Part shown: positions 5,249 to 51,324 of the stretch, in pieces
How the letters are laid out: each line of letters starts with the position of its first letter
Position numbering within the stretch: the stretch's first letter is position 1
IMG/VR virus record: IMGVR_UViG_3300035703_000009
Location: 62,001-126,000 of that record
Direction: 5' to 3' (one strand)
Length of the DNA: 64,000 nt
Made by a program: the position numbers and the translations under genes
The notes under the pieces: model-generated
What the model saw: the letters and a program-made list of their open reading frames with translations, nothing else
Told to the model about the DNA's origin: nothing
Database searches by the model: none

Positions 5249-5274
5249 AGATACTAAATTTTTTCCAACGGTTA
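5249..5274 (-). promoter_or_regulatory. Putative middle-type bipartite promoter TAACC-N15-GTATCT
   Basis: Partial match to the motif recurring upstream of replication operons. Confidence 0.5.
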
Positions 5275-5277
5275 AAG

Positions 5278-5285
5278 ATAAATAA
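5278..5285 (+). promoter_or_regulatory. Putative late promoter ATAAATAA
   Basis: Resembles the T4 gp55 late promoter TATAAATA; recurs upstream of structural genes. Confidence 0.65.
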
Positions 5286-5302
5286 TAAAAAATCTCGAAC
5301 AA

Positions 5303-5533
5303 ATGAGTAATCCTGTAATGAATTACAATCAATTCATGTCAGCTTTCAAAAAGGCTGCATCTGGCTATAGCGGCAAGGCAAACATCAAGAATGATGATGC
5401 TACTGGAACTGCAAAAGTTAAGCAAGAATTGGCTGAAGGCCCAGTTAAGGGTAAAGGAACGCCTCACATCGACAAGTACACTAAACAGTATCTGTCAACT
5501 GTGAAGAACAAGAACATTGTAAAAACTAAGTAA
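5303..5533 (+). CDS. Small basic hypothetical protein, possibly virion-internal
   Basis: 76 aa, Lys-rich, follows a late promoter. Confidence 0.7.
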   Translation: MSNPVMNYNQFMSAFKKAASGYSGKANIKNDDATGTAKVKQELAEGPVKGKGTPHIDKYTKQYLSTVKNKNIVKTK

Positions 5534-5539
5534 ATCCAA

Positions 5540-5794
5540 ATGCAGAGAGCAATTCAAACATTTGAAGAGTTCGCGCTTTATGAAAAGAAGGGTGATCTTA
5601 AGAAGCTAGTAGGCAAGGAGGAAGACGAAGAACTCACAGTCAATGATGCCAAGAAACTTGGAGTCAAGATTGCAAACATGGAAGGTGAGGAAAAGAAAAA
5701 ATATGTCGGAATCGTTAACTTTCTAGGGGCTTCGTGTAACCTCTACAATGAACTTTGGAAGAACTACAAGAGAGTCAGAGATCGTAAAGCCTAA
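5540..5794 (+). CDS. Hypothetical protein with capsid-targeting-like N-terminus
   Basis: MQRAIQTFEEFALYE leader; TAATG coupling to the next gene. Confidence 0.7.
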   Translation: MQRAIQTFEEFALYEKKGDLKKLVGKEEDEELTVNDAKKLGVKIANMEGEEKKKYVGIVNFLGASCNLYNELWKNYKRVRDRKA

Positions 5795-6609
5795 TGAGCA
5801 AACTTTTCGAAAAATATGGAGACGAGGCTAGCGCAAAAGACGGAGGTTTCGTCTTCCAAGCAATCATTAGCCATGATGTAAAGTGGGAGATAGTTAACGG
5901 GGAGACCAAAATAGACCCGAAAAAAATTAGTTCCACTTTACACCAAGTTGATGTTTTTCCCGATATCAAGCTTTCTGAAGGTAGTGCTCTTTCCACATAT
6001 GTGATGCTGAGCGAAGTCAACATTCTAAAGAGAAAATTTGAGCTGGCAAGCGAAGCCATCAAAAAGAGGCTTAAGCCCGAATATCGCCAAGAGGTCGAAT
6101 CACTAAAGGCCAGGGGACTCACCAGCGAACAACGCAAAGCGCTTAACCTGCGACACTTTCAAAACACTTATTATGAAGCATCGGTCGTGACCGATCGGCT
6201 AGTATTACGCGAAGTTTCAACCAGCGGAATCGACTCAGGCTCGCCGAGAATCACCTTAAAGATCTCGACTGGCATGGTTGACACGCTGGATGCCAAGCCA
6301 GCTAAGACTTGGGAGGCATTCACTATCAAAGTAGACGGATCTACTCAGCTAGTCTTAAATAACTCGACTGAAGCTATTTCTTCTATCCAAGAGTTTGATG
6401 AGATTGAGAAGGTAAACGATGTGGTCTTTAGGACCATCTTGCCATCTCTGCTACTAGAATTCAAAGGCGACCGAGTATTCATAGACACACTATCAAACAG
6501 GTCAGCTCAAGTAGCGGTAGGCTCGCTTACTGACTATGATAACCTGTTTACAGTATCGGACAAAACAGTAACGGGTCAAACTGCTCCGCCTGCCGCGATA
6601 AATAAATAA
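5794..6609 (+). CDS. Hypothetical late protein
   Basis: 271 aa ORF in the late operon. Confidence 0.75.
   Translation: MSKLFEKYGDEASAKDGGFVFQAIISHDVKWEIVNGETKIDPKKISSTLHQVDVFPDIKLSEGSALSTYVMLSEVNILKRKFELASEAIKKRLKPEYRQEVESLKARGLTSEQRKALNLRHFQNTYYEASVVTDRLVLREVSTSGIDSGSPRITLKISTGMVDTLDAKPAKTWEAFTIKVDGSTQLVLNNSTEAISSIQEFDEIEKVNDVVFRTILPSLLLEFKGDRVFIDTLSNRSAQVAVGSLTDYDNLFTVSDKTVTGQTAPPAAINK
6598..6605 (+). promoter_or_regulatory. Putative late promoter ATAAATAA
   Basis: 25 nt upstream of the tail tube ATG. Confidence 0.65.
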
Positions 6610-6629
6610 AACAAAATAATCACGATAAA

Positions 6630-7199
6630 ATGGCCGGATTACCACATTGGAATAATTCTAGAGCTGCTACTAACTATTACGAACCGATTTTCTTAAATCA
6701 GTTTGAGGTTATTATCACTCCACCTGCAGCAATTGCAGACAACGTTGACCTTTTGGTTGAGCACGTAATGTCTATCGGAGGCCTACCTGAGTTGACTCCG
6801 ACTGAGACTGTGACTCAGACATATAAGTTTGCTAAGCGTTCATACGCAGCAGCTGTTCCAGCAGACACAGTTGCGAACCTGGATATTAAGTTTTCAATTA
6901 ACTTGAACGAGGACAATAACATGTACATTTATAACATCCTCAGAGGATGGGCAGACCTCGCATACGATCCCCTGACTGGTCGTCAAGGTCTAAAAAGAGA
7001 CTACTATGGAGAAATCTATGTAGCTATCTTCAATAAGGCAGGTGACATCTTCAGAGAGTTTAGGTTTACGCCAGTAATCCCACAAGGCGGACTTACTCCG
7101 ATGGCTCTTGACTACTTGTCAAACAACCTTTATGAAGTGACTGCTAAATTTAGAGCAGATGCTTGGAAAGAGACTAGAGTAGGTCAAATCACCGTTTAA
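6630..7199 (+). CDS. Tail tube protein (gp19-like)
   Basis: 189 aa; EPIFLNQFEV, W..L.YDPLTG.QGLKRDY and C-terminal F.AD.W resemble myophage tube proteins. Confidence 0.7.
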   Translation: MAGLPHWNNSRAATNYYEPIFLNQFEVIITPPAAIADNVDLLVEHVMSIGGLPELTPTETVTQTYKFAKRSYAAAVPADTVANLDIKFSINLNEDNNMYIYNILRGWADLAYDPLTGRQGLKRDYYGEIYVAIFNKAGDIFREFRFTPVIPQGGLTPMALDYLSNNLYEVTAKFRADAWKETRVGQITV

Positions 7200-7215
7200 A
7201 ATAACTAGAACTAAC

Positions 7216-7869
7216 ATGGAAATGTTTAACGTGCATCGCAGAGATGTAATGAATTTCGATAACTATATGGACCTTAAGAAACCAGGTTTTGGCGGACCTA
7301 GCTCAGCTGTCGCTTTTAAAGACAAGAGCGGTAAGCGAGTTGTGGACAATCCAAAGCTACAGGAGTTTCAAAGAGTGGTCGAGAGAGATCCAATGTTTGC
7401 CAGCAAACACTATGACTCTACTTATAAAGCAATGACTCATGATGTCATCTACAAGCAAGAAAAGAAAAAGCCAGTAAAATACCGCGATCCTTACTTGACT
7501 GCACTACCTGTGGTCGACATTTCAAAGGTCGAAGAGAGCTTTGCCTGCACATCATTTAGAAAGTTTGTTAACGAGCAGGATGAAAGCGATTTTGAGTTGC
7601 CTGAGCTAGACTTTGAAGACGAGAAAATGCTACCTGGAGATCATGACGATAGTGAATACGAAGTAAGAGGAGAAGACTTTGAAGAGATGGAAGAACCTAT
7701 TGAGCAGGACGATGAGTTTGAAATGGATGAGCCGGACGAAAAAGACGACTTTTATGATGAGGACAAACCTCCAATGGAAAGCGAACCCACTTCGAAGGAC
7801 ATCGATGACATTGAACGAATGCTAAAATCCTTTGAAACAGGAGGAAGCGACGAAGAATACGAAGACTAA
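7216..7869 (+). CDS. Hypothetical protein with highly acidic C-terminal half
   Basis: 217 aa; D/E-rich tail after SFRKFVNE. Confidence 0.8.
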   Translation: MEMFNVHRRDVMNFDNYMDLKKPGFGGPSSAVAFKDKSGKRVVDNPKLQEFQRVVERDPMFASKHYDSTYKAMTHDVIYKQEKKKPVKYRDPYLTALPVVDISKVEESFACTSFRKFVNEQDESDFELPELDFEDEKMLPGDHDDSEYEVRGEDFEEMEEPIEQDDEFEMDEPDEKDDFYDEDKPPMESEPTSKDIDDIERMLKSFETGGSDEEYED

Positions 7870-7872
7870 AAC

Positions 7873-7900
7873 AAAGGCCGAGATAATCTCGGCCTTTTTT
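7873..7900. terminator. Bidirectional intrinsic terminator
   Basis: AAAGGCCGAGA-TAA-TCTCGGCCTTTTTT between convergent genes. Confidence 0.9.
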
Positions 7901-8303
7901 ATTTTACTTGAACTACTTGCACCTTTTCTATTTCCCGGATCTCGATCTCCTCTAACTCCTTTGATTTTATTAGAGTGTAATCGAACTTAATGTTCTCGTA
8001 TTGGTCCTCAATGAAGTCCAACGTGTTAAGGATCAGTGAGGTCGAAATGTTTGAGTTTAAGTAGATAACTTGCTTGTACTTTTGGTTCTTGATGTTGACC
8101 GCTTTATCTAGGAGTTTTTTGACCTCATAGTTTAGCAAAAAAGACTGTATTTTGTTTGGCACTATAAACTTAGTCTTAAACTTTTCTTTAATGATCTTGT
8201 TAACGTTAAGCACATAGTCTTCCTTGCTCTTCTTTTCAAATGCAGCAATGAAGTGTTTATACTCACGAACAAAGATTATGCTTACTGTTCTCTCTTCCAT
8301 CAT
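7899..8303 (-). CDS. Hypothetical protein
   Basis: 134 aa; ATGA overlap with the dCMP deaminase stop. Confidence 0.75.
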   Translation of the reverse strand: MMEERTVSIIFVREYKHFIAAFEKKSKEDYVLNVNKIIKEKFKTKFIVPNKIQSFLLNYEVKKLLDKAVNIKNQKYKQVIYLNSNISTSLILNTLDFIEDQYENIKFDYTLIKSKELEEIEIREIEKVQVVQVK

Positions 8304-8719
8304 ACTTCTAATTTTACGACGTCGACCCCAGCTTCCCTAAGTATCTGTAAGTTACTGACATCTCGATATTCTTCAGCATAGATCACCCGCTTGATTCCAG
8401 CTTGGATGATGAGCTTGGTGCAGTCTTTACAAGGAGAAAGTGTGACATATAGTGTCGCACCTTCGACGTTTTGAGTAGACCGAGCCACCTTTAAGATTGC
8501 ATTTGCCTCAGCATGTAATACATACCAGTGAGTGTTTCCATCGCAGTCTTCACACTCGTTATTAAAGCCTTTAGGCGTGCCATTGAAGCCGTCTGAAATA
8601 ATGGTTCCGTCTTTCACGATTATAGCGCCGACTTTTTTACGAGTACAACAAGAAAGAACAGACCATTGTTTGGCCATCTTTAAGTAAGTGATGTGGTATT
8701 TAAGCTCCTTGCTGATCAC
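8300..8719 (-). CDS. dCMP deaminase
   Basis: KVGAII, GFNGTP, HAEANAI and SPCKDC zinc motifs. Confidence 0.93.
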   Translation of the reverse strand: MISKELKYHITYLKMAKQWSVLSCCTRKKVGAIIVKDGTIISDGFNGTPKGFNNECEDCDGNTHWYVLHAEANAILKVARSTQNVEGATLYVTLSPCKDCTKLIIQAGIKRVIYAEEYRDVSNLQILREAGVDVVKLEV

Positions 8720-8909
8720 GGTTGGAAGGTTTTAGGTTATTAGGTAGGACGGCTGTCGCGATTACAATGATCGCGAGCCACTGCATGTAACTCAAGTCAA
8801 CAGCAAAGGTCTTGGCTAAGAATAGAGAATACATCACCCAGCAGATGGCGGCACAGGTGAGATACTCGAATGCTACTGGAAGGTATTTGATGAATTTAAA
8901 GTCTTTCAT
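8700..8909 (-). CDS. Small two-TM membrane protein
   Basis: Two hydrophobic segments in 69 aa. Confidence 0.65.
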   Translation of the reverse strand: MKDFKFIKYLPVAFEYLTCAAICWVMYSLFLAKTFAVDLSYMQWLAIIVIATAVLPNNLKPSNRDQQGA

Positions 8910-8910
8910 G

Positions 8911-9777
8911 TTATTGGATGTTTGTGTGGATCCACTTTAGCAGAGGATCTTCTAGTAATTTAGGATCAGGATTTTTAAAGTCTGCAAAGAACTTAATTAA
9001 GTCGGAAGTAGGGTCCCCGTTCTCACTTATGAGGTTGACACCTACTGCTGGGATAGATTCTGGCACAAGTTCAGAGGTCAGCATCTTTTCGATTGCCTCA
9101 AAATGGTGCTCATAGATGTGAAACGAGTTATCGATGTGAGTGTATGTGCCCATCTCTAAGTCCGGATAGTGCGGTTTTAGGTGAGCAAGTGCCTGTGATT
9201 GCAAGACGGTAAAAAAAGCCAAGTCAGTCGGTAGTCCCCAAATCACGTCATTACTGCGCATTGAAATGGTGAGGTTGAGCTTGTTTTCACGAATATGAAA
9301 GATTCCATACATGGTGCACACAAAATCCCGGTTTGAGCGATACTGATGTTTTGGCAAGTTAAAGTGCATGATGGCTTGTCGCGAGTCCTTGTCCTTGATT
9401 AGGGAAGAGATCGCCCAGTCATACTGGCTAAAATCATGGTCATTGAGCTCGGTAAAAAGAAGGTTGCCATACGACGAATTTACCGTACCGTCATAGTTTT
9501 GAATGGTCGTCCAGAACTTGGCATACTCAGAGATGAAGTCGGCGTCGTTGCGTCCCATAAAATACCACAGCAGCTCAGCGGCGATGTATTTCTTTTGGGA
9601 AGACCTAAATTGATTTGAATATAGACATGACAGCGGATCCTCTAAGATCAGGACAGTATTGATGTTTTCCTTAACTAGCAGATCTCGAGGTCTGGTCTCG
9701 TATTCTGGGTTAGTCATTAGCTCATGTAGGCTTTCTCCATATACTGATGCAAAACTCTTGTCTTTATATACACGCAT
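8911..9777 (-). CDS. Thymidylate-synthase-family enzyme, T4 gp42 (dCMP hydroxymethylase)-like
   Basis: VNSSYG, DSRQAI, catalytic DFVCT, MRSNDVIWGLPTD, SFHIYE; start moved to 9777 because the upstream ATG lies inside the promoter motif. Confidence 0.85.
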   Translation of the reverse strand: MRVYKDKSFASVYGESLHELMTNPEYETRPRDLLVKENINTVLILEDPLSCLYSNQFRSSQKKYIAAELLWYFMGRNDADFISEYAKFWTTIQNYDGTVNSSYGNLLFTELNDHDFSQYDWAISSLIKDKDSRQAIMHFNLPKHQYRSNRDFVCTMYGIFHIRENKLNLTISMRSNDVIWGLPTDLAFFTVLQSQALAHLKPHYPDLEMGTYTHIDNSFHIYEHHFEAIEKMLTSELVPESIPAVGVNLISENGDPTSDLIKFFADFKNPDPKLLEDPLLKWIHTNIQ

Positions 9778-9796
9778 AGTCTTAGTATTTGACTTT

Positions 9797-9823
9797 TTAT
9801 ACATGGCATCGCACTACAAGTTT
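9797..9823 (-). promoter_or_regulatory. Bipartite promoter AAACT-N16-GTATAA
   Basis: Exact match to the recurring motif. Confidence 0.65.
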
Positions 9824-9835
9824 TAATCTCGACAA

Positions 9836-9843
9836 ATAAATAA
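9836..9843 (+). promoter_or_regulatory. Putative late promoter ATAAATAA
   Basis: Upstream of the plus-strand operon starting at 9858. Confidence 0.6.
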
Positions 9844-9857
9844 ATAAAATAGAATAG

Positions 9858-10226
9858 ATGTCTCTACAAAAGGTTTGGATAAAATGGGGTCAATTGAATG
9901 TTCAGTGGGGAGCAATCAACCTGACGTGGAGCGAGATCTATACGTATCTTGAAATAGCGAAAGGCAGTGGAGCCGGTGGAATAATAGTTGATCCAGAAAA
10001 AGTATGGAGCAGCGTTGATGCTGACCTAAAGAAACAAGGATACGATAAGGATACTCGAGAAAAGTTTTTAAAGGTAGTGGTCAAGGTAAATGGACTTGAA
10101 ACTGACTCTTCTAGAAAAATGGAGAGCATTAAAAAGTCGATCACTGTCGACCACATTAAAAATACGATAGCTAAGGTGACTCCTGAAGTAAGAGTTCACG
10201 CGATACAGGTTAAAAGAAATGGGTAA
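9858..10226 (+). CDS. Hypothetical late protein
   Basis: 122 aa; Trp-rich N-terminus. Confidence 0.75.
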   Translation: MSLQKVWIKWGQLNVQWGAINLTWSEIYTYLEIAKGSGAGGIIVDPEKVWSSVDADLKKQGYDKDTREKFLKVVVKVNGLETDSSRKMESIKKSITVDHIKNTIAKVTPEVRVHAIQVKRNG

Positions 10227-10986: not shown

Positions 10987-10995
10987 TTTTAACGC

Positions 10996-19583: not shown

Positions 19584-19918
19584 TCGAAAGTATAAAAAGT
19601 GAGTAATCCTTTTTGAGTAAAGTGAATTTCTTCACCCTTGACCTCAAGTAATTGCTGTGAGATCAAGACTTTGATCTTTTTAACTAGATCTTGTTTGAAA
19701 GTTTCATCTTTTAGCTGATCACCAAAGACGTATTTGAAAGTTTTGCTTGAAAACTTCATGTTTTGGGGGTCCAGTTTCTTACCTTTTATCTCTATCACTC
19801 GAAGCAAGTACTGCGAAATATCAAAAAGGACCGCAAGATCGTCTTGCAGGTCCTTATGCGAGTGTAAGTTAAGATAGTATTTGATCGGAAGATCAGAGCG
19901 CAGTTTCATTTGATTCAT
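19580..19918 (-). CDS. Hypothetical protein, possible winged helix
   Basis: C-terminal LLEVKGEEIHFTQKG resembles a wHTH wing; lies between uvsX and helicase. Confidence 0.65.
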   Translation of the reverse strand: MNQMKLRSDLPIKYYLNLHSHKDLQDDLAVLFDISQYLLRVIEIKGKKLDPQNMKFSSKTFKYVFGDQLKDETFKQDLVKKIKVLISQQLLEVKGEEIHFTQKGLLTFYTFE

Positions 19919-21112: not shown

Positions 21113-21138
21113 TTTTACTTAAAATGAGGAAAAAGTTC
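21113..21138 (-). promoter_or_regulatory. Bipartite promoter GAACT-N15-GTAAAA
   Basis: Upstream of uvsX. Confidence 0.6.
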
Positions 21139-22916: not shown

Positions 22917-24343
22917 TACTTCTTTGCATTTTTTAAACTCTTGATCTCGCCTTGGGTTTTAATACGTTCGTCATAAAGTCTGGTCAAGATCGTACGTGCT
23001 ACTGAATCGTTTGCGCTAGAAAAAACCGTGTCGTTTTTAGTGAAGATTTCTCCACCTTTTATCTTGACCCTGTCTTTCTTACCAAGATAAGTGTCTGGCG
23101 AGATGTTGAACTGTATTTGAATATTTGGGTACATCGATGAGAAGTCATAACATGACACGTAGTTATAGTAGTCTGGGTTTGGCTTCATAACATATGCTCC
23201 CTCATAAGTTGCGTCTTCCGGTGTTCCTTCTCCCCACGGAAGTTTCATCATCTTTAGGTTCTTGTTTAAGAACTCACGACACATGAGGATCTCTGCAATA
23301 TAGACTGGGCTGAATACTTTATTGACCTCTACTTGTGCGACGTTAGCAATTGAGTAAGCCACATCAAGAAGAGAGAGCTTGTCCTCAATTAACTTAACGA
23401 GCACTACGTCGATCACATTGTAAAGAGTAAAGAGATAGGTGTCCTTTTGAAAATCAAAGAAGGTAGAGTATTTATGTTTCAGCTTGTTTGCACCGAGTAC
23501 TAGGCCGGCAATATGGTCGAGCTTGTAGTTTTCAACTACCTTGTAGGGCTTTAGCTTTTCAAACACTTGCATATAGTCTAAGACTCCTAAATGGGATGGG
23601 ATCTTGTTCTTTGACACATGAGAGCGAGAAGGCATGTTTTGCATGGAATCGAGCTTTAGGTTACGTGCACGATTCATCAGGTACTTCCAGTCAAATTCGG
23701 TCACGTTCCAGCCTGTCACAAACGATAGCTTTGGAACGATGTTATGAAAGTAGAAGCTCATCAACTCTTCTTCGCTATTGAAGTATTTGTATTTGATCTT
23801 AAACTCTTGCTGGAATAACCTGGCGTCCTCTGGTTTTAATGGAATGATCTTTCTAAAGTAGTCATTGACTTCTACTTCCATACGTGAGATCTCTTCCTGA
23901 GTTAACCCGTTTGGATGGTCATCGTCGTTTAGGATGGAAAGTATGTAGGTGACGTTGTCTTCGTTACAGAAGGAGATGAGACCGACTGGCATGCGAGCGC
24001 CTTCTGGATCTGGAAAAGAGTCATTTATTAGCTTGATCTCGATATCGAGGTAGGTCTTCTTTGGTAAGTTGTCAAAGCTGTAAATTGCTTCAAGCTCACT
24101 AGGGCTTAGTTTGTCTTGGATTAACTCTTGCACTCTAAACTGACTCACGTATTTACCTCCAGTTTGACTCTTCTTCACGAAACGACCGTCCCAGTTACGT
24201 TGCGTAGTGGCGGTCTGTGACTCAACCCAGTTGAAAAGCTCGTGATCGAGCACCCTTTTTCTGATGAAGGCTATCTTACCCGCCGCATCGTAATATGAAA
24301 TGAGTAGTGTGCCGTCTTCTAATACTTCTGAGCCTATTATCAT
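22916..24343 (-). CDS. Family B DNA polymerase, N-terminal part only (exonuclease plus motif A)
   Basis: ExoI YLDIEI, ExoII GWNVTEFD, ExoIII YNVID, YEGAYV, motif A YDFSSMYPNI; motifs B and C absent. Confidence 0.88.
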   Translation of the reverse strand: MIIGSEVLEDGTLLISYYDAAGKIAFIRKRVLDHELFNWVESQTATTQRNWDGRFVKKSQTGGKYVSQFRVQELIQDKLSPSELEAIYSFDNLPKKTYLDIEIKLINDSFPDPEGARMPVGLISFCNEDNVTYILSILNDDDHPNGLTQEEISRMEVEVNDYFRKIIPLKPEDARLFQQEFKIKYKYFNSEEELMSFYFHNIVPKLSFVTGWNVTEFDWKYLMNRARNLKLDSMQNMPSRSHVSKNKIPSHLGVLDYMQVFEKLKPYKVVENYKLDHIAGLVLGANKLKHKYSTFFDFQKDTYLFTLYNVIDVVLVKLIEDKLSLLDVAYSIANVAQVEVNKVFSPVYIAEILMCREFLNKNLKMMKLPWGEGTPEDATYEGAYVMKPNPDYYNYVSCYDFSSMYPNIQIQFNISPDTYLGKKDRVKIKGGEIFTKNDTVFSSANDSVARTILTRLYDERIKTQGEIKSLKNAKK

Positions 24344-25106: not shown

Positions 25107-25133
25107 TTGTACTTTTGAAAAGCTAAGGAGTTC
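25107..25133 (-). promoter_or_regulatory. Bipartite promoter GAACT-N16-GTACAA
   Basis: Upstream of the dNTPase-polymerase operon. Confidence 0.65.
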
Positions 25134-25174
25134 TTTATTTTCCTGCTTTTTTTAGAAATTCAGCCCGTTTGCAG

Positions 25175-25182
25175 ATAAATAA
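25175..25182 (+). promoter_or_regulatory. Late promoter ATAAATAA
   Basis: Upstream of the tail sheath gene. Confidence 0.7.
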
Positions 25183-25202
25183 TTAAAAATACAAGAATAG
25201 AA

Positions 25203-31624: not shown

Positions 31625-31650
31625 TTATACTAAAAATTGGGTGAAAGTTT
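31625..31650 (-). promoter_or_regulatory. Bipartite promoter AAACT-N15-GTATAA
   Basis: Upstream of the SSB gene. Confidence 0.7.
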
Positions 31651-31664: not shown

Positions 31665-31689
31665 AAAATGCCTCACTAAGGAGGCATTC
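31665..31689 (-). terminator. Intrinsic terminator
   Basis: AATGCCTC/GAGGCATT stem with a short T tail on the minus strand. Confidence 0.7.
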
Positions 31690-32000: not shown

Positions 32001-32026
32001 TTGTACTTGATCTAAGAATAAAGTTT
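32001..32026 (-). promoter_or_regulatory. Bipartite promoter AAACT-N15-GTACAA, plus late ATAAATAA at 31982-31989
   Basis: Upstream of the Hc1 gene. Confidence 0.65.
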
Positions 32027-37498: not shown

Positions 37499-37525
37499 TT
37501 ATATCATGCAAGTTGATTAAAGTTT
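37499..37525 (-). promoter_or_regulatory. Bipartite promoter AAACT-N16-ATATAA
   Basis: Upstream of the S1-like gene. Confidence 0.55.
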
Positions 37526-40500: not shown

Positions 40501-42075
40501 CTTTTCTGGACTGGGCTTTAAGTCATCCATCACTCCCTTGATCCTTGCGATCTCCGAGCTAAGGTCAGAAAGAGCAGTGGCTACCGCTAAGTTTTGATTT
40601 TTGATTCCATTAACGATGTTGCGTAGTGTTGATGAAGAGTCAGTTGTGAACTTATTGACTCGACCAATGGCTAAAAGTAATTGGACTTCACGTCTAGCAA
40701 TGTTTCTAAACACTGCACGAATGCCGTCCTTTGCTGGATCGATTACTTGCATTCTTTTTTCCCTTTTCTTGTTGTCAAAAGTTACTTCAAAGTTTTGATA
40801 AAACTGTTGTAGCTTATCAAGATCCTTGACAAAGTATTCAGAACCATTTTCTCTCTTTTTCTCAGATTCAGTACCCTTGACTTTAGGATCGATTGCGGCA
40901 GCTTCAGTAGTTAATCCGCGATCGTCTAAAGTGAATAAGTTGTTGATTGGATCTGCAAGTAGATTGTAATAGTTGGTGTAGATCTTACCTAACACTGGAA
41001 CGTCTGTTGCTTGTGATAACTCATCTACTGAAAAAATGGATGAACTCGCAAAGAAGGACTGTTTTTCTAATAGAGAGTTACCTTTGACTGGAAAATCTAC
41101 TTTTTGATTTACATAAGTCTTGGTTTGCTGGTCTTGTACTTGGGTCTCAAGCTTGAAAGAAAAGAGCTGTGGAAAGTTGATCTTAAACTTAAAAAATGAT
41201 TGGTTTGCTGCCTGATTCACGGAAGTAGGAGCAGAACCTACTTCAAATACTTGGATGCACTGTGAATATGCAGAGATTTGAGACTGTATTTGAGTAAGCT
41301 GTGAACGGTCAATGTAGTTAGAATATAGGTTGGATAGCGCAGTAGAGATGTCTGAATTAGCCGCACCGCTATTTAAACCTCCAACTAAGGCATTATAATA
41401 CTTATTGTTAAAGACTGGAATCGATGCTTCCTTGCCTTTAAGAAGGTTTTGTTGTACTAGGACTTGTGACTCAAGGTTAGCGATGTTTAAGTTGATCATC
41501 TCAAGACTAACTGAGAGATTAGCGATATTTGCACCTTTAGTTATCTTATTAAGTAGAGTAGAGCGTTCGGTATTTGCTTGATCGAGCTTGATCTTTAGCT
41601 CTTTTTCCTTTTCTAAGACTGAACTAAATTCCTTTAGTATTCTGGCTAATTCGTTTGCCCTTTCCTCAAAATAAGAGGCAACTGGCTCAAAGTTATCTTG
41701 ATATTCGATTAGTTTATCATGTAAGGCTGAGTATTTGACATAGAGCTCGCGTTCTTTTTCAAGGGAAGCAGAAATGGTCTCGACCGAGTCTATACATTTT
41801 TTGACCGGATTAGCAGTTGGCGTGTTTTCAAGGTCTTGGATTAGTTTTTCAATGTCCGCCGTGCTTAGCTCCGGTAATAACTGTGGAGCTGGTTCTTCAC
41901 AGGGAAGCTCAGTGATCTGTCCAAAGGGAGCGCCTACTTCATCAGTAGGATCGCACAAGGATAGGTCATACAGCTCTTTGAGCTGTTGTTCAGTAAACTT
42001 GCTCTTGACTTCACTAGGAGGGATCCCGAGAACGTTTGCAATTTCATTGATGATTAAGTCGATAACTGAGTCCAT
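37534..42075 (-). CDS. Large (1513 aa) coiled-coil protein with hydrophobic segments, probable virion protein
   Basis: Late promoter ATAAATAA at 42081-42088; helical regions plus a hydrophobic, Pro-rich block. Confidence 0.7.
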   Translation of the reverse strand: MDSVIDLIINEIANVLGIPPSEVKSKFTEQQLKELYDLSLCDPTDEVGAPFGQITELPCEEPAPQLLPELSTADIEKLIQDLENTPTANPVKKCIDSVETISASLEKERELYVKYSALHDKLIEYQDNFEPVASYFEERANELARILKEFSSVLEKEKELKIKLDQANTERSTLLNKITKGANIANLSVSLEMINLNIANLESQVLVQQNLLKGKEASIPVFNNKYYNALVGGLNSGAANSDISTALSNLYSNYIDRSQLTQIQSQISAYSQCIQVFEVGSAPTSVNQAANQSFFKFKINFPQLFSFKLETQVQDQQTKTYVNQKVDFPVKGNSLLEKQSFFASSSIFSVDELSQATDVPVLGKIYTNYYNLLADPINNLFTLDDRGLTTEAAAIDPKVKGTESEKKRENGSEYFVKDLDKLQQFYQNFEVTFDNKKREKRMQVIDPAKDGIRAVFRNIARREVQLLLAIGRVNKFTTDSSSTLRNIVNGIKNQNLAVATALSDLSSEIARIKGVMDDLKPSPEKVKARLKKQSPECFDKMDQETQPANCVSVMGKLGKDPLYLKSITEGTDATLPCSNQLCYWVQFSLVANIMGLIPMPNLPNFNQLRYWPVGFVIPTPGGLIKIPLPVIWLPLVSIATPMGTIVIFLTINGIFISPIIFFVSSTGFKQHIFTVRGPSPKFGFSGDEESIKPGVQKSVAFLANREKIQRLAKEAIDGKEFNLSSAQKAQVAKQRNILNVVESTAKSSGNKNRLLKVAREKRNLELSISNLGPHERLQNILDKTESAKDAIEDAKRAIHQRINDLGKPNLTKANELKTKITKRQDQLLLNLQQALANGDDAAAKTIREQVKIDGSDMDEKISAIKADMKTYYDRLKFPTISIPKDSSKLEPQPNAILDFLNEVLEFSSMYKSNFISQDSLKLRNMLLVQLAKNKTKIKTKIDGDLASGQSLDVEKDFDKIQKYLLDVNSTLVDSLKGSGGEAAVKAQAAKVNSQKDKVNAEKDPKKKRDLEKELQTLQVQFSDIFDNARVKEALALTPAALAALGQLKVDFNPFSPCCAKSGFQLDLSGLSPAIPIIESVRLVLDGYVKSLTPKQFKSLVGDKKTISPRELTSSYIGIIKNTVPANLAIPVPAFNLLTFAASFSGILASLFELRIPNPARTPFPARIKIDLNLLKPVLLNALMDFLDNSLPDPKKYTAPSPKQITPADSTLTAGEAAALSSKPAQPTKLDSDIKIVTCEPDDSQKSAISDGGYKPNVNYDSPDDVNTNLSTRSIIKAPTSSPFSSGNVVAQSDRDVLPSFSTLDFDFLSINPSDLLAVLKNFIDLGFDIAEKILDQFYKIISLLKSAKGTKINLLESIQYSLPSFFPPIAPPYLPTFIGITKIRENTGKSNTMQIMDTDVIQEKLKIVETVLGPIANSPLPMLVALIAGIADHVTATVPLPPTPKLDTTNFSFSMVDSTKPSYLTVRNLHPVVSQDDIPSWERLSPANPLFLLFVDQFLAAGADKVGLFREYL

Positions 42076-42154: not shown

Positions 42155-44553
<2,399 letters not shown>

Positions 44554-44569: not shown

Positions 44570-45313
44570 TTATGCTTGGAAGTCTTGTACTACAGGTAGG
44601 CTGGAGAGTTTCAGTAAAATTTGGGCACAAACAAAAACATCCTTTTGACAGTAGGTAGCGATGCGAGGAACGTCTCCTTCTTGCCAAAATACTCTGCCTA
44701 CTTCTTCGCCTCGGATATCGTCTTTAGGTGTAGGCAAGCCTAGGGCAGTTGCTAACAACTCAAGAGATGCGAAACCTTCTTGCCATGCACCAAAGCTCCA
44801 AAGCTCAGAAGTATCAATTAGTGGCATTTCCCAAGGTTTAAGGTTGGTAAGCTGAAGACCTTTAGGCAAAGGGCGACCTGACATGATAATTCTTTTACAC
44901 ATCATTGGTACATCAAATCGCTTGATGTTGTGACCAACAAACTTATAGGTTGCAAACTTTTCAAAGACTGTTGAAATACCTTCAAGCACCTCTTGCTCGT
45001 CCTTTGATGCATAACTTTTGATGGTCATTTTAGGAAAATTACCTATCACTGGATCGTTTTCAAAAGAGATTCGACCAAAGGATGCACAGACGATACGACT
45101 AAACTCGGGAGTAAGTCCGGCTTTTGCTACATATAGTGAGTCATCTGACATTTCTCTGTTTTCTTCAAATCGGGTGCGAAGGTAGTCGCAGCGCTTACGC
45201 CAAAGCTCAGCCATTTTTGGGCTAGCGTCTTCAAGGTCGCTTAGAGTCGCGTAGGTTGATGCTGTTTCCAGGTCAAAAAAGACCATTTTTGCAAGTTCTG
45301 ATTGAGAGTACAT
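44570..45313 (-). CDS. DEDD 3'-5' exonuclease (PolB-exonuclease-like, Bacteroidota-type)
   Basis: FFDLET, GHNIKRFDVP, YCQKDV. Confidence 0.88.
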   Translation of the reverse strand: MYSQSELAKMVFFDLETASTYATLSDLEDASPKMAELWRKRCDYLRTRFEENREMSDDSLYVAKAGLTPEFSRIVCASFGRISFENDPVIGNFPKMTIKSYASKDEQEVLEGISTVFEKFATYKFVGHNIKRFDVPMMCKRIIMSGRPLPKGLQLTNLKPWEMPLIDTSELWSFGAWQEGFASLELLATALGLPTPKDDIRGEEVGRVFWQEGDVPRIATYCQKDVFVCAQILLKLSSLPVVQDFQA

Positions 45314-45859: not shown

Positions 45860-45891
45860 ACTCTGATATAATACTAAACTTAGGTAATTGG

Positions 45892-46185
45892 TTAAATTAT
45901 CTCACCCTTTGCGATCTCTTCAGCACGATTGAGAATGGTTAAGTGTTTCTCGATCTGCGCTCTCCACCAATCCCTGCTTAAGTTAGCATCTTGTGTGTCT
46001 GCAAAAATGGTGAATATCTTTTTAGGTATCACTTCCTCGTAAGTAGGACCATAGAATACCCATTTTTTCTTTATGATCACGACAGTACCTAGGTAAAATT
46101 CTGTACGTGTAGATTCGCCGTATTCACAGGCATCATAGAATGTTTGATACTGTAGATTTATTCCGTTTATGTTGATTTCTTTCAT
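45892..46185 (-). CDS. Hypothetical protein
   Basis: 97 aa ORF. Confidence 0.7.
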   Translation of the reverse strand: MKEININGINLQYQTFYDACEYGESTRTEFYLGTVVIIKKKWVFYGPTYEEVIPKKIFTIFADTQDANLSRDWWRAQIEKHLTILNRAEEIAKGEII

Positions 46186-46186
46186 A

Positions 46187-46672: not shown

Positions 46673-46736
46673 CTTTTTTAGATTTTATTTGTTATTAAAG
46701 TATTGATAGTTTATTTCTAAGTTTAGTAGTCCCATG

Positions 46737-48275
46737 TTATTTGCTGGCTAATTCAGCCACTCTTTTTCTGATTTGAGTTAATGTTGTTTGATTGTAAAGC
46801 TTACCGTCTTCAAAGATAGTTTGCAAAAGACCAGTTGCTTCTTGCTCTGGTGTGCATTCAGTATGGACAACATACTCACCGTCCTCTTCAGACACTGCAA
46901 CGAATCCTTTAAGTGATTTCTTGGTGCCGTCATCCGTTATTGGGTCCTTGTAGATGTTGTAACCTACTCCATTGATCTCAAACCATGCGCCTTTGGCTGC
47001 AAAGCCTAAAGCATCGCGAGTGTTACATTGGTAGGTAAAGGAACCAACGCCTAAGACGATGTTAGTGGTTGCAAAACCATTCTCAGCAAGCTTCTCGTAA
47101 ATCTGAATCTGCCGTTCTAGTGTGATTGAGTCACCGTATATCGCTCCAATGTGAGAGTCAAGCAACTTGTAACCGGCCTCAGTGGTAGTGCCGCCGAATA
47201 TTTCCCATAGGAGTTGGATTACTCCTTTCTTTTCGTCCGTTGAAATCCACTTGCCAGTCTCATTAACTCGATAGCCAAGGACTGATCTATCTACTCCATG
47301 TTCAACAGTAACTTCATAGTCATGGTAGCCACAAACGATTCGAACCGGATCTCCTGAGTCAGGGCGTATCACCAGCTTACCGTTGCGTGCCATGATCTTG
47401 GCCTTGTTTTCAGGCAAGTATTTAGTGATCAGAGTCCAAAGGTCAAATGTGTCGGATACGATGGATAAGATTCCTTCTGGGAATTGATCAAGGTAATAAT
47501 CGATCATCTTGCTCTCACCCATGGTAAAGATGCACGTGGTAGAAACTGAGTGTTCTGACGCATTCACTGAGCTGATGCAGACTTCATTAGTCGGCTCATC
47601 GTAGAAGTAGCGAGCAGCCGGAATGACTACTAGTGTGTCTGAGCCGCGAAAGGATGTGGCATGACCCAGGCCAGATGTCATCATGTCCCAAGGAGACAGA
47701 CCACGTGCGCTAAAGTCGTGAGCTAAGTAGTCAATCAACCACTTGTTTGCAGGATCTGTCTTTGCTACCCATTGTGCTAGATTGCGACGATACTGCAGAG
47801 CGATCGTTGCTGATGTAGTTGGTTTCCAAGCAATGGAACTGATGATCGTCTCTAGATAAAGAGTTAACCACGCAAAACCATCAACGGTATTGATGAAGGT
47901 CATGTGAGGTATGTTTGGATTGGTCTCTATTCCCTCAGGAAGAGACTTGATTCGTATCGGTAAGTAACCCAGGTCGTGTAGTGCTTCAAAGTGAGAGCCA
48001 TCATATTTTAGACCTAGGTACATGCACATGTCTTTTGTAAAGATTAATGCAGCATCTTTAGGTAGCTCAAAAAAGTTTTCTTGAAACTCGTCACGAAGCC
48101 AGCGAACTACCAGTTGCTGGCCGAACGACAGGATCTTTTTGACGCCAGTTGGCGCGTACTTTAGGCTACGTGGGATCCATGTGCCATATAGTTTTTGGGT
48201 GCCTGGCGCAAGCATTCTTTTATGGCCTATCTTATAGCCATCTGTGTAGTACAGGGCAGTTGGTTTAAAACTCAT
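46737..48275 (-). CDS. NAMPT-family enzyme (Namat-like, NARP1)
   Basis: TDGYKIGH, HDFSARG, ASEHSV, SIVSDTFD, VIRPDSGDP, IYGDSIT, KKSLKG. Confidence 0.92.
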   Translation of the reverse strand: MSFKPTALYYTDGYKIGHKRMLAPGTQKLYGTWIPRSLKYAPTGVKKILSFGQQLVVRWLRDEFQENFFELPKDAALIFTKDMCMYLGLKYDGSHFEALHDLGYLPIRIKSLPEGIETNPNIPHMTFINTVDGFAWLTLYLETIISSIAWKPTTSATIALQYRRNLAQWVAKTDPANKWLIDYLAHDFSARGLSPWDMMTSGLGHATSFRGSDTLVVIPAARYFYDEPTNEVCISSVNASEHSVSTTCIFTMGESKMIDYYLDQFPEGILSIVSDTFDLWTLITKYLPENKAKIMARNGKLVIRPDSGDPVRIVCGYHDYEVTVEHGVDRSVLGYRVNETGKWISTDEKKGVIQLLWEIFGGTTTEAGYKLLDSHIGAIYGDSITLERQIQIYEKLAENGFATTNIVLGVGSFTYQCNTRDALGFAAKGAWFEINGVGYNIYKDPITDDGTKKSLKGFVAVSEEDGEYVVHTECTPEQEATGLLQTIFEDGKLYNQTTLTQIRKRVAELASK

Positions 48276-48284
48276 ATTGTAGAT

Positions 48285-48773: not shown

Positions 48774-49263
48774 GGTTTTCGAGTATTTGTAGTGAGGCCT
48801 GAAGTAGGTCATCGAACTTTGAGTAGTTTGGAACGCGGTAACGATCACACACGATGTCAACGTTACCCTTGCGCCAAAAACCTTCTGGACAGCACACTAG
48901 TAGCTTATCAGAGTCTGCAAACTTGCCTAGCTCTAATAGGGAGATAGGTGACTTGGTGTTAGGATCAAAATACATGATGATTAGAGTTGCCTCCTCCAAT
49001 GCGGTCAATTCCCAGTTTACTTGTTGGTAGAAGTTGGCGTTTTCAAACGTTTGTTCCCAACTGGAGTCCCAGTCTTCTCTACGCGGACTGTAAACTACTA
49101 CTTCTACTCCATTTTCTTCGTAAAACTGGATGGCTTTCTTTTGCCAGTCCTCTGCCTTACCCATTTCAATGCTGCCTGCAAGAAAGATGGAAGGCTTGGT
49201 TGAATCTGAGTCTCTAAAGATCGGAGCTGGTGGTTTGATAACGTGGACGGATTGATTTTTCAT
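48766..49263 (-). CDS. Nucleoside 2-deoxyribosyltransferase-like N-glycosidase
   Basis: IFLAGSIE, PRREDWD, QVNWE, PISLLELG with the catalytic Glu. Confidence 0.8.
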   Translation of the reverse strand: MKNQSVHVIKPPAPIFRDSDSTKPSIFLAGSIEMGKAEDWQKKAIQFYEENGVEVVVYSPRREDWDSSWEQTFENANFYQQVNWELTALEEATLIIMYFDPNTKSPISLLELGKFADSDKLLVCCPEGFWRKGNVDIVCDRYRVPNYSKFDDLLQASLQILENHE

Positions 49264-49278
49264 AAAGTATATGTTATT

Positions 49279-50163
49279 TTAAAAGACATCAAGTTGACCT
49301 ACTACTGAGTTTTCAATGTCTGAATAGCTATTGCTACAGTAGATGCCGTCAAGATGCTTACTAAGCTCATCAAAGCCTGCTGAAAATATGCCGTGTGAAA
49401 CGACTAGGTAAATCTTGCCAGTTCTTTCAGGCTGGGTCTTTTTGATCTCTTCGGCGATGTTTAAGAAAGTTCGACCGCCGTCACAGATGTCATCGATGAT
49501 GATTAGATTCTTTGAGTAGTGATCGATTCTGACTGGCACGTGAGTCTTACTCAGTTTACCATCGGTGTCTCGATACTTGCTACAGGTAAGGACCTCACCT
49601 GTGAATTGTAGGTTCTTAGCAACAGTATAGATCTTCTTTAGACTACCTGCGTCAGGTGAAACAAAGACGCATGATTCTAGGAAAGAGCTGACTGCTAGGT
49701 CTCGATTAGCTGCCACACGACTGATGAATGAGCTGACTATTTGAGTATTGTCAACCACTTTAAGTCGATTGATGCAGGCAGCTGCGACATCTGAGTGAAC
49801 ATCAATGCAGGTGACGCTCTCGAACTCCAATGAGTTTAGGATAGGAGCGATCACGTCTCGTAAGTAAGAAGTTCCACCTTCAACGAACTGTCGATCGCTG
49901 CGAGCTCCCATCACGTAAGGAACATACAGGTGGATTTCTTTGACTCCAAGATTACGAAGAGCTTTGGTAGCGCAGATGATTATCTCAAGATCCTTAAAGG
50001 AGTTGAAACGTGATCTGATCTCGACCATGTCTTTTTTTGGATTGATGCTTGAATGAATGGATACTGCATCAAGCAACTGAATGTCCTGCTGGCCGTCTGG
50101 AAAACGGGAGATTTTGTACTTGATTTCTGAGCAAGACTGGTCAACTAAATTTAAGATTTTCAT
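49279..50163 (-). CDS. Ribose-phosphate pyrophosphokinase-like enzyme (Adps-like, NARP1)
   Basis: FPDGQ, PYVMGARSDR, DVHS, SPDAGS, IIDDICDGGRTF, VSHGIFS. Confidence 0.9.
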   Translation of the reverse strand: MKILNLVDQSCSEIKYKISRFPDGQQDIQLLDAVSIHSSINPKKDMVEIRSRFNSFKDLEIIICATKALRNLGVKEIHLYVPYVMGARSDRQFVEGGTSYLRDVIAPILNSLEFESVTCIDVHSDVAAACINRLKVVDNTQIVSSFISRVAANRDLAVSSFLESCVFVSPDAGSLKKIYTVAKNLQFTGEVLTCSKYRDTDGKLSKTHVPVRIDHYSKNLIIIDDICDGGRTFLNIAEEIKKTQPERTGKIYLVVSHGIFSAGFDELSKHLDGIYCSNSYSDIENSVVGQLDVF

Positions 50164-51104
50164 TCAAAACTGAATTTATTTGGAGTTAATAAAAGACTAC
50201 TTTCTGTTGATGCTGAGTCGGTACGATATTTTAGGACTGCTAGATCTTTGGCTTTTGCCTCGACCTCAACATCCACATCCAAGTCATAGTGAGGAATGAC
50301 CTCATAAATGTAATCGGCATGCGATCGATTGAGAGCGCTGGCATCTTCGTACAATCTAGTACTACTATAGTGCTGCAGCGGTTTATGTTTGTACCAAGTA
50401 GAAGCTGCAAGGTGTGCGGCTTCTTGCGGAGAGAGACCGCTTGTGCAGAATCTATGATGTAGGTGGTCAAAGGTGATCGGGCAGCCTACTCCATTATAGA
50501 TGCCGTCATATAGGTCAAGCACGCTGAACTGGGTGGCTTTATCGTCATTTTCGACAACAAGGCGGGCCTTGGTAGAGTCAGCCAGGCGATCGAAGTTTGT
50601 GCAAAACCGCTGGATTGCAGAAGGCTTGTCGCCATATGTGCCGCCGATATGGATGTTGATTGGTGCGGCATAGCTTTTAGGCAGCTGCATGAGATCCATG
50701 ATGCGTGCGTGCTGGTCCAGATCATATATCGTCTTGTCGACTATACTTTGAGTAGGAGAAGCAAGCACATCGAACTGGCCTGGGTGAAAGGAGATGCGCA
50801 AGTTGTGTTGGTGCACGAACTCGCCGATTTGCTGCATGATCCCTACTAGCTTATCATAGTTAGGTAGCTGTTCGAACATATACTCGCTCATCCAAGGAAA
50901 TATGTCACTGGACATGCGATAGACTCTAATGTCATGCTCTAGGTTCCACTGCAGTATCTTACAAAGATCTTGTAGGTTCTGTTCAGCAAGTAGAGCCGCT
51001 CGAGCAATGCCTTGTTCTAGCCATGTCTTTTTGACCATGCCTCGATTTATAGTAATCCCTTGCTCACGCAAGCTAAGGTTGATGCAACAATATCCTAATC
51101 TCAT
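50160..51104 (-). CDS. uvsE: UV-damage endonuclease
   Basis: RLGYCCIN, RMSSDIFP, FHPGQF, VENDD, FDHLHH, SHAD, EAKAKD. Confidence 0.92.
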   Translation of the reverse strand: MRLGYCCINLSLREQGITINRGMVKKTWLEQGIARAALLAEQNLQDLCKILQWNLEHDIRVYRMSSDIFPWMSEYMFEQLPNYDKLVGIMQQIGEFVHQHNLRISFHPGQFDVLASPTQSIVDKTIYDLDQHARIMDLMQLPKSYAAPINIHIGGTYGDKPSAIQRFCTNFDRLADSTKARLVVENDDKATQFSVLDLYDGIYNGVGCPITFDHLHHRFCTSGLSPQEAAHLAASTWYKHKPLQHYSSTRLYEDASALNRSHADYIYEVIPHYDLDVDVEVEAKAKDLAVLKYRTDSASTESSLLLTPNKFSFE

Positions 51105-51142
51105 ATTGCTAATGTACTACAAATGGGTGAAAACTAAAAATT

Positions 51143-51242
51143 CCGCGAGCGGGCGCCCTACTAGAGTAGCTATTATAGTAATAATTATAGTAAGAATAGA
51201 GTAATACTATAGTACTACTATAGCTACACCCACCCACCACCC
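51143..51242. other. Structured intergenic element at a strand switch (candidate origin or ncRNA)
   Basis: GC clamp, 62 nt imperfect AT-rich inverted repeat at 51166-51227, and a CCCACCCACCACCC tract. Confidence 0.45.
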
Positions 51243-51246
51243 ATTG

Positions 51247-51324
51247 TTGTACTAGCAAAAAAGCTTATGGTTTTGAGAATAAATATCATATTGAGTAGAA
51301 CTCTTTAATAACTTCAACGTATAA
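51247..51324. promoter_or_regulatory. Back-to-back bipartite promoters: minus AAACC-N16-GTACAA (51247-51273) and plus GAACT-N16-GTATAA (51298-51324)
   Basis: Both match the recurring motif. Confidence 0.65.

Follow-up and report, generated by a model that had tools for sequence, protein, structure and literature searches.

A recurrent two-box motif in a T4-like jumbo phage is very probably a phage-specific ECF-type promoter

Definition and frequency of the motif

Which protein reads the short two-box motif that recurs in a 64,000-nucleotide stretch of viral DNA (IMG/VR record IMGVR_UViG_3300035703_000009, positions 62,001 to 126,000; hereafter the window), and which genes does the motif serve? 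The window corresponds to bases 62001-126000 of the full IMG/VR record (G000), a linear sequence of 207,110 bp with 42% G+C and a completeness of approximately 81% (CheckV estimate). An initial annotation of the window had listed ten sites, found by eye, as a phage-specific bipartite promoter. Our analysis indicates that the motif is very probably a phage-specific promoter of the extracytoplasmic function (ECF) type. The best overall explanation, which we favor with moderate confidence, is that the middle (replication-phase) genes of a T4-like jumbo phage are expressed from this promoter and that an ECF-type sigma factor of the phage itself reads it.

The motif, designated class III below, has the form (A/G)AAC(T/C)TT, 14-15 bases, GTAnAA, and a position weight matrix trained on the best sites of the genome gives the consensus (t)AAAACTT(t)-N-(a)GTAyAA. 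The matrix was refined at a threshold of 16 bits, as a lax threshold drifted (109 sites vs. 42 in shuffles); above 16 bits the matrix finds 27 sites in G000 and approximately 3 in shuffles. Sixteen of these 27 are intergenic, in a genome of which 7% is intergenic DNA (p ~2e-12), and 15 lie at most 40 nt upstream of a co-oriented ATG. The strict pattern [AGT]AAC[TC]-N15/16-GTA[TC]AA, as first proposed, occurs 21 times in G000 compared with 2.5 ± 1.5 (maximum 7) in dinucleotide shuffles, and AAACY-N15/16-GTAYAA is found 5 times within the window, where 0.42 are expected. When only the intergenic DNA was shuffled, [AG]AAC[CT]-N15/16-GTANAA was observed 14 times against 0.43 expected, so that the motif passes the comparison with shuffled sequence that the initial annotation had set for it. 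A blind ranking of all 4-mer/4-mer dyads (half a million) placed AACT-N17-ATAA at the top. The motif is real, and its frequency greatly exceeds what chance would give.

The sequences at all ten listed coordinates agree with their earlier description, and six sites (9797, 25107, 31625, 32001, 51247, and 51298) obey the strict pattern. At the other four the -10 box GTA[TC]AA does not hold (GTATCT at 5249, GTAAAA at 21113, ATATAA at 37499, and GTATTA at 45869), and GTAnAA describes the box better. The spacer had been given as always 15 or 16 nt, which is mostly correct across four genomes in which 14-17 nt were allowed (15 nt, n = 38; 16 nt, n = 21), but spacers of 14 nt (n = 3) and 17 nt (n = 5) also occur.

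The motif is oriented towards the gene that it precedes, lies 7-37 nt ahead of start codons, and is also found ahead of tRNA arrays (G000 positions 184739, 188956, and 190397). Because of these sites before tRNA arrays, and because the site of the gp32-like gene follows a conserved terminator hairpin, the motif appears to act on transcription rather than on translation, and we infer that it is a transcription start signal. A different role, as the target of a repressor, nucleoid protein, or replication protein or as a leader element in translation, is very improbable. The phage does encode an Hc1-like DNA-binding protein, and the promoter reading is drawn from sequence. However, the two boxes are kept at a rigid 15/16 spacing while the sequence between them drifts freely, the motif has a strict orientation to the gene and a fixed short distance to the start, its sites come after terminators and ahead of tRNA genes, and it closely resembles known sigma-dependent promoters. 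These features argue for a promoter, as the initial annotation had proposed.

Conservation in related phages

Ahead of the gene for the gp32-like single-strand DNA binding protein, a matrix match of at least 14 bits is present 0-49 nt before the start in 57 of 57 distinct related loci. Both boxes are kept at these loci and the spacer sequence varies freely; the hairpin and T run upstream of the promoter are kept in nearly all of them. A further match 300-499 nt before gp32, in the same relative place as the promoter of the Hc1 gene in the window, is found in 42 related loci, and the remaining matches are four elsewhere on that strand and three on the opposite strand.

Upstream of UvsX, the pair TAGAACTTTT...GTA(A/G/C)AA is retained in 37 of 46 distinct relatives. 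The window site at 21113 is for this reason considered a member despite its score of 10.8 bits, and the variants GTA(A/G/C)AA show that the -10 box is free at its fourth base. One subgroup has GATCC for GAACT at this site; a covariation of the -35 box with a sigma factor helix was considered and rejected, as the subgroup genome G010 keeps AAAC(C/T) elsewhere. For gp55, the box pair lies approximately 700 nt upstream, ahead of a RuvC-like gene, in 24 of the 25 relatives with enough upstream DNA. Related-locus scans with the RuvC-like protein and with the 288-aa sigma factor described below as queries returned nothing, and gp55 and whole-record searches took their place.

Three distant relatives were analyzed whole: G010 (217 kb), C291 (254 kb), and G013 (271 kb), the last of which is 100% complete by CheckV. 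Their G+C content is 33-38%, and their ECF sigma factors are 41-43% identical to that of G000. Each holds 14-22 sites at 3-60 nt before ATGs, where 0.4-0.7 are expected, and 5-13 sites in intergenic DNA, compared with 0.5-0.8 in shuffles. C291 (CAIWBA010000291.1, L208-L220; 254,203 bp) is filed in a 'Bacteroidetes bacterium' metagenome-assembled genome and is a mis-binned virus, a related jumbo phage with 79% identity to the present phage in UvsX, 55-62% in gp55, and 41% in the ECF sigma factor. Of the 15 exact motif matches in this bin, 10 are on the 254-kb phage contig, and the other 5 are spread over 2.25 Mb, below a reversed-pattern control. The signal therefore belongs to the phage, in line with the phage specificity first claimed for it. 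Among megaphages, the exact motif was not enriched in Lak-A1 (9 vs. 7 in the control), LR756502 (14 vs. 6), or LR756500 (5 vs. 6).

Promoter type

Promoters of ECF sigma factors have AAC at -35 in common, with spacers of 14-17 (PMC5758882). In the sites of G000 and its relatives (A/G)AAC(T/C) is nearly invariant at this position, a short conserved -10 box (GTAnAA) follows at a spacing of mostly 15 or 16, and the same genome encodes a two-domain ECF sigma factor of 207 aa. Autoregulation, a usual feature of ECF systems, is missing, as the operon of this sigma factor lacks the motif.

Two characterized cellular systems are close to the motif. In Escherichia coli, sigmaE reads a -35 element GGAACTTTT and a -10 element (T/C)GGTCAAAA with a preferred spacer of 16 between GGAACTT and TCAAA (Rhodius et al., 2006, PMC1312014). 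The phage sites share with it the AAC core followed by TT(T), a -10 of the form GTxAAA/GTAnAA, high information in both boxes, A/T-rich DNA upstream, and the distance between the boxes (15 from GGAACTT to GTCAAA; 14-15 from AAACTT to GTAnAA in the phage). In contrast to sigmaE promoters, the third base of the phage -10 box is A rather than C and the fourth is free, and the -35 box begins with A/G-A instead of GG. The regulons differ as well (replication genes rather than envelope stress), and the phage-encoded sigma factor has no recognizable anti-sigma factor and an operon of its own without the motif. Bacillus subtilis sigmaW (ECF01) reads tGAAACnTTTt and CGTA (PMC5758882). The likeness lies in the AAAC with a T-tract at -35, the GTA in the -10 box, and an AAAC-to-GTA distance of 16-17, and SigW is the closest relative by sequence of the phage sigma factor among solved structures; the phage GTA, however, is preceded by A or T and not by C, and the two proteins are only approximately 21% identical.

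Other promoter types fit less well. The motif differs from the sigma70-type TTGACA-N17-TATAAT in that its -35 box is AAAC and the position equivalent to -7 is not conserved. It likewise differs from the primary promoter of Bacteroidota (-33 TTTG, -7 TAnnTTTG), as TAnnTTTG is absent from the class III sites and is found ahead of 6 genes only in the genome. Both types had been excluded in the initial annotation, rightly in our view, and a separate, clustered TAtaTTTAC class fills the early role. Class III is not a T4-type single late box lacking a -35 element either; such late boxes form a class of their own.

It is quite unlikely that host machinery reads the motif, be it a host ECF sigma factor (RpoE/SigW type) or the primary sigma factor redirected to AAACTT by an unrecognized phage activator. 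The boxes look like those of ordinary cellular ECF promoters, many phage open reading frames (ORFs) lack an assigned function, and T4-like phages are known to use sigma appropriation at middle promoters (PMC2988021). Against this, the genome gave no match to PF09158 (MotCF) or PF09010 (AsiA), and the MotA box, (a/t)(a/t)(a/t)TGCTTtA combined with a sigma70-type -10 box, differs in sequence and in position, lying at -30, while the AAAC box is found at -35 with ECF spacing. Moreover, the -10 box is unlike the TAnnTTTG of Bacteroidota, few matches lie outside the phage contig in the sole candidate host bin, and it would be risky for replication genes to hang on a stress-gated host sigma factor in a phage that has an ECF sigma factor of its own.

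Candidate sigma factors

A whole-genome search for sigma domains identified three genes, encoding a gp55-like protein, a 288-aa RpoD/RpoS-like protein (sigma288; 198975-199841), and a 207-aa ECF-type protein (153259-153882). The last of these, outside the window, is the kind of phage sigma factor that the AAC core had led the initial annotation to expect. It scores 48.5 bits with TIGR02937 (cut-off 42.9) and contains Sigma70_r2, and among solved structures SigW (5wuq) is closest to it in sequence. An AlphaFold model (pLDDT 79) consists of two helical domains and, in fold comparisons, is matched best by ECF sigma factors without exception. Orthologs are present in at least 95 related viral contig stretches, as well as in the related records G006, G008, G010-G013, and C291; three fragmentary records (33-50% complete) among those searched had no match. 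The DNA-facing helices RFTTWIxTIA(R/K)NE and N(E/L)NTVKTK(L/I)RK are invariant in 17 orthologs with 41-65% identity, a constancy that parallels that of the promoter boxes and is a moderate argument for a pairing of the two. We infer that this ECF sigma factor reads the motif, an assignment that we consider reasonably probable. The flanking ORFs p105 and p157 are syntenic in the relatives and match no Pfam or PHROG family.

Several points weigh against this pairing. Conserved recognition helices are expected of any sigma factor, and the -10 box GTAnAA is unlike the CGT/GTC cores of characterized ECF sigma factors. The p105-ECF operon is not preceded by the motif; it carries a T(A/T)GTAT(A/T/C)(A/T)T box (class II; G000 152925-152933, plus strand), conserved upstream of the operon in more than 40 relatives, with no AAC box at the right distance. 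In addition, the ECF gene directly follows the large terminase gene in a region that looks late, and its predicted early expression depends on this conserved TAGTATnnT box. All 20 public runs that hold the phage (17 studies) are DNA runs and none is an RNA run. Finally, sigma288-like genes lie within the early-promoter cluster in G013, C291, and G010, and by the logic of phage SPO1 an RpoD-like sigma factor from an early cluster would be the natural candidate for reading the next class.

As to autoregulation, which is usual although not universal among cellular ECF sigma factors, no convincing class III site was found at the ECF operon in G010, G013, or C291. A conserved AAGAAACT...GTATAA stretch in G013 and C291 was considered as an autoregulatory site and rejected, being coding sequence and absent from G000.

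The position of the sigma288-like genes gives rise to an alternative that we regard as unlikely, if less so than reading by the host, namely that the motif is read by sigma288, made early from host-type promoters and replacing the host primary sigma factor in the manner of gp28 of phage SPO1. The ECF sigma factor would then serve a smaller class, for instance the TAGTATnnT boxes. From their place in the early clusters, the sigma288-like proteins are probably the first phage sigma factors, and the replication genes would come next. Residues that read -12 and -35 are altered in sigma288 (Q437K, T440L, and R584N in an alignment to SigA), suggesting that TTGACA/TATAAT is not read as such; the TA of GTAnAA could equal -12T/-11A of a sigma70-type -10 element; and a spacing of 15-17 is compatible with group 1-3 sigma factors too. 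However, the sigma288 family is heterogeneous, with one or two paralogs of 238-332 aa that are approximately 30% identical, and its 4.2 helix differs among genomes that share an identical -35 box. Furthermore, the motif has no conserved T at -7, which sigma factors that keep region 1.2, like sigma288, normally need, and an AAC -35 box with a T-tract is the hallmark of ECF promoters.

Promoter classes and a possible cascade

Four promoter-like classes can be distinguished in these genomes, E, II (TAGTATnnT), III (the motif studied here), and L ((A/G)ATAAATAA). Class E, AAAAGTTTTTTAgTGTCAA-N6-8-TnnTTATATTTAC, forms clusters ahead of small genes, with one such region in each genome. Its extended consensus, AAAA(A)GTTTTTTA(G/C)TGTCAA-N6-8-TnnTTATATTTAC, is strongly conserved and lies 17-30 nt before small ORFs, and its TAtaTTTAC box resembles the TAnnTTTG -7 box of Bacteroidota. 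In G000 there are 4 copies on the plus strand (204277-206746; L202:18277-19900 and L203:60-790), at the truncated end of the record, and the relatives have 7-15 copies (G010 48-10492, G013 162002-169898, and C291 68706-78545).

The class II box, TAGTAT(A/C/T)(A/T/G)T, is found only 6-18 nt before a few ATGs, in the window at 5248-5256, 45868-45876, and 3738-3746 (all on the minus strand). Genome-wide it is weakly enriched (26 vs. 16.6 in shuffles), and with this weak count it was not accepted as a firm genome-wide class; what favors a class is only where the boxes lie and that the one before the ECF operon is conserved. If the boxes are -10 elements, the mRNAs would be nearly leaderless.

Class L boxes lie 15-25 nt before approximately 45 ATGs, mostly of structural genes, a count to be taken as an upper bound, as leaders of the AAATAA type overlap ATAAATAA. 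The genes behind class III serve replication and nucleotide metabolism, and the structural genes carry ATAAATAA instead. At four sites a late box merges with the class III -10 box to give GTATAAATAA (L201:18739-18763, L202:2956-2981, L202:4397-4421, and L202:12931-12956); tRNA arrays follow three of these sites, and a ClpP-like gene follows one. This fusion suggests both middle and late expression, which would keep these genes on through the late phase.

In the mechanism that we propose, host core RNA polymerase with the 207-aa ECF-type sigma factor would bind the class III motif. Domain 4 of the sigma factor would read the -35 box (A/G)AAC(T/C)TT, and domain 2 would read and melt the -10 box GTAnAA 14-15 bp downstream; transcription would start approximately 5-8 nt after the -10 box, leaving leaders of 10-30 nt. 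Class III would drive the genes for DNA polymerase, helicase, gp32, UvsX, exonucleases, nucleotide metabolism, and the Hc1-like protein, the tRNA arrays, and the ruvC-gp55 operon, after which gp55 would turn on the (A/G)ATAAATAA late promoters. The step from class III through gp55 to class L, already suggested in the initial annotation, is well supported by the conserved promoter before ruvC-gp55. As in a cascade of the SPO1 type, the gene for the next sigma factor lies behind the preceding promoter class, a statement about placement in the sequence. For the upstream links, class E to sigma288 and class II to the ECF sigma factor, it is the placement of the genes that points to a connection.

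Taken together, these links would describe a widespread clade of freshwater phages of 200-270 kb, with probable hosts in the Bacteroidota, that has a four-tier cascade and three phage sigma factors of three families, a joint reading that we put forward tentatively and consider rather less probable than its middle tier. In it, host sigmaA would act on clustered TAtaTTTAC-type early promoters to give the RpoD/RpoS-like sigma factor; a delayed-early TAGTATnnT class would then yield the ECF-type sigma factor, working without an anti-sigma factor; this would act on AAACTT-N14/15-GTAnAA (replication genes, tRNAs, and gp55); and gp55 would act on ATAAATAA. If this joint reading is true, it would give the first ECF sigma factor shown as an obligatory viral developmental regulator, complete regulon included.

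Comparison with known phage systems

In T4 and SPO1, temporal control by phage-encoded sigma factors is textbook knowledge. Uncultured lake phages and the large T4-like phages that infect Bacteroidota are known to us from lists of sigma factor genes, but not from any account of what these sigma factors read. Neither a phage regulon with ECF-type promoters nor the present consensus sequences were described in the open-access texts that we searched. Phage sigma cascades being known, what is new here is an ECF-type variant and not a categorically new kind of system.

In the Bacillus phage SPO1, host sigmaA is followed by gp28 and then by gp33/34, and a sigma cascade is also known from phage SP10 (PMC9429907; PMC13401047). 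The present phage resembles these in having several sigma factor genes, in that each class would be read by the product of the preceding class, and in a middle class of replication genes. It differs from them in the sigma families, the consensus sequences, the probable host phylum (Bacteroidota), and a late stage of the T4 gp55 type. In T4 (PMC2988021), middle promoters depend on sigma appropriation by MotA/AsiA and late promoters are read by gp55 on TATAAATA. The two phages have in common part of their gene set (gp32, UvsX, gp55, and tail sheath), late boxes that resemble each other ((A/G)ATAAATAA and TATAAATA), and, to judge from its promoter, a late sigma gene expressed from the middle class; in contrast to T4, the present phage has no MotA box, MotA, or AsiA, and its middle class seems to use a dedicated sigma factor. 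Group 2 jumbo phages, including Prevotella Lak and Tenacibaculum PTm1, encode minimal gp55-like and RpoD-like sigma factors and no RNA polymerase of their own (Iyer et al., 2021, PMC7824862). That study lists sigma genes and not their cognate promoters. UvsX and the ECF sigma factor of the present phage have their best database matches in Lak and Mahaphage genomes.

The candidate regulon comprises approximately 25-30 promoters per genome, conserved over a large clade, and covers the replication module, the tRNA arrays, and the late sigma gene. It is legible in full from sequence and comes with a specific candidate reader, which makes a testable sigma-promoter pair. It would represent an ECF-type promoter grammar (AAC ... 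GTxxAA) co-opted for virus development. With the promoter classes, genes of these phages whose function is unknown can also be assigned to time classes, and the motif may provide an orthogonal expression part for Bacteroidota, in which primary promoters differ from those of E. coli.

Sites in the window

Eight of the ten sites listed initially were retained as members or probable members, two were not, and four sites in the window had been overlooked (19679, 22933, 41452, and 44585). By matrix score, 9797, 31625, 32001, and 51247 are strong (22-25 bits), and 21113, 25107, and 37499 are intermediate (10.8-12.7 bits).

The site with the best score in the genome (24.7 bits; 32001..32026, minus strand) is the candidate promoter of the Hc1 histone-like gene (31711-31980; Pfam Hc1). 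Downstream of it, a terminator-like hairpin and T run (AATGCCTC...GAGGCATTTT; 31665..31688, minus strand), which probably ends the Hc1 transcription unit, directly precedes the promoter of the gp32-like gene (31625..31650, minus strand; 22.2 bits; gene 30581-31603, phrog_224). A thymidylate-synthase-like gene (Pfam Thymidylat_synt) is preceded by AAACT-N16-GTATAA (9797..9823, minus strand; 23.9 bits); this gene likely begins at an in-frame ATG (9777) located 19 nt past the box.

Ahead of uvdE (50160-51104; Pfam UvdE), the class III site (51247..51273, minus strand; 22.4 bits) is separated from the gene by a structured leader. This leader of 143 nt (51105-51246, minus strand) contains GGGTGGTGGGTGGGTG (51227-51242) and repeats of the TACTATA type, and it folds better than all 200 shuffles (z = -2.9); no Rfam family was matched. 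It may act as a regulatory leader or a small RNA, or may be an origin-like region. In the other direction, the ruvC-gp55 operon has the promoter GAACT-N16-GTATAA with a moderate score (51298..51324, plus strand; 14.8 bits). The RuvC-like gene (51356-52015, plus strand) and the gp55-like late sigma gene (52025..52423, plus strand) are separated by 9 nt, and the latter matches phrog_234 (late sigma factor, E 3.8e-16) and, weakly, Sigma70_r2.

The intermediate sites are variants. The promoter of the UvsX/RecA gene (19893-21092; Pfam RecA) is GAACT-N15-GTAAAA (21113..21138, minus strand). The promoter of the NTP pyrophosphohydrolase gene (24618-25085; phrog_173), GAACT-N16-GTACAA (25107..25133, minus strand; 11.4 bits), matches the strict pattern and points away from GATAAATAA (25171-25192), the late box of the divergent tail sheath gene. 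For the S1-domain protein gene (36310-37479; Pfam S1) the probable promoter is AAACT-N16-ATATAA (37499..37525, minus strand; 12.7 bits), with a perfect -35 box and a weak -10 box.

The overlooked sites are all on the minus strand. The candidate at 19679..19704 (19.2 bits) is inside ORF 19580-19918, 95 nt 5' of the DnaB-like helicase gene (18108-19583; helicase phrog_19). Site 44585..44611 (20.3 bits) is at the 3' end of an exonuclease gene (44570-45313), 31 nt ahead of the TTG start of the exonuclease gene 43804-44553 (phrog_298). The high-scoring match at 41452..41478 (22.5 bits) is inside an ORF of 1513 aa with no start codon nearby, and is either an internal promoter or due to chance. Site 22933..22959 (20.0 bits) is at the 3' end of the gene for the N-part of a DNA polymerase, 16 nt ahead of ORF 22623-22916. 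This family-B DNA polymerase is encoded as two genes approximately 68 kb apart, the N-part at 22916-24343 of the window and the C-part at L195:16537-17973 (both on the minus strand). A class III site is present directly 5' of the C-part gene, and the site of the N-part is the one in its own 3' end, ahead of the next ORF.

The two sites rejected as class III, 5249..5274 (2.5 bits) and 45869..45894 (3.6 bits), both on the minus strand, lack the AAAC box and carry only the TAGTATnnT box of class II 8-17 nt before an ATG, TAGTATCTT 17 nt before ORF 5039-5230 and TAGTATTAT 8 nt before ORF 45314-45859, respectively.

Phage, gene content, and host

The annotated phage collection contains no close relative of the phage, as judged by megablast of 20 kb and tblastn of the 1513-aa ORF. 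This ORF (37534-42075, minus strand) matches no Pfam or PHROG family and had no tblastn match in that collection. Lake metagenomes commonly contain the phage, which is present in 20 DNA runs from 17 studies.

Host assignment points to Bacteroidota, which we consider probable. The best database matches of UvsX and the ECF sigma factor are Prevotella Lak megaphages and Mahaphage genomes, and the latter have predicted Bacteroidetes hosts (PMC7162821); the bin of the mis-binned C291 is weak evidence on the host. Throughout the window, starts lack a Shine-Dalgarno motif and have A-rich leaders instead, and A-rich sequence of the AAATAA type lies 5-25 nt 5' of approximately 95 of 248 starts. Such leaders fit the Bacteroidota style of translation initiation.

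Based on Pfam and PHROG, the minus strand of the window is a replication and nucleotide-metabolism module, with a DnaB-like helicase, UvsX/RecA, the split family-B DNA polymerase, NTP pyrophosphohydrolase, exonucleases, the gp32-like protein, the Hc1 histone-like protein, ribonucleotide reductase, the S1-domain protein, GroEL, nicotinamide phosphoribosyltransferase (NAMPT), and UvdE. The plus strand carries structural genes (tail sheath and large virion proteins), the RuvC-like gene, and the gp55-like gene. Auxiliary genes lie inside the replication module on the minus strand, for the GroEL chaperonin (42155-43795), NAMPT (46737-48275), and the Hc1 histone-like protein. Elsewhere in the genome, 35 tRNA genes, all on the plus strand, are located within approximately 9 kb (L201:18945-19202 and L202:1779-7629) and cover nearly all amino acids.

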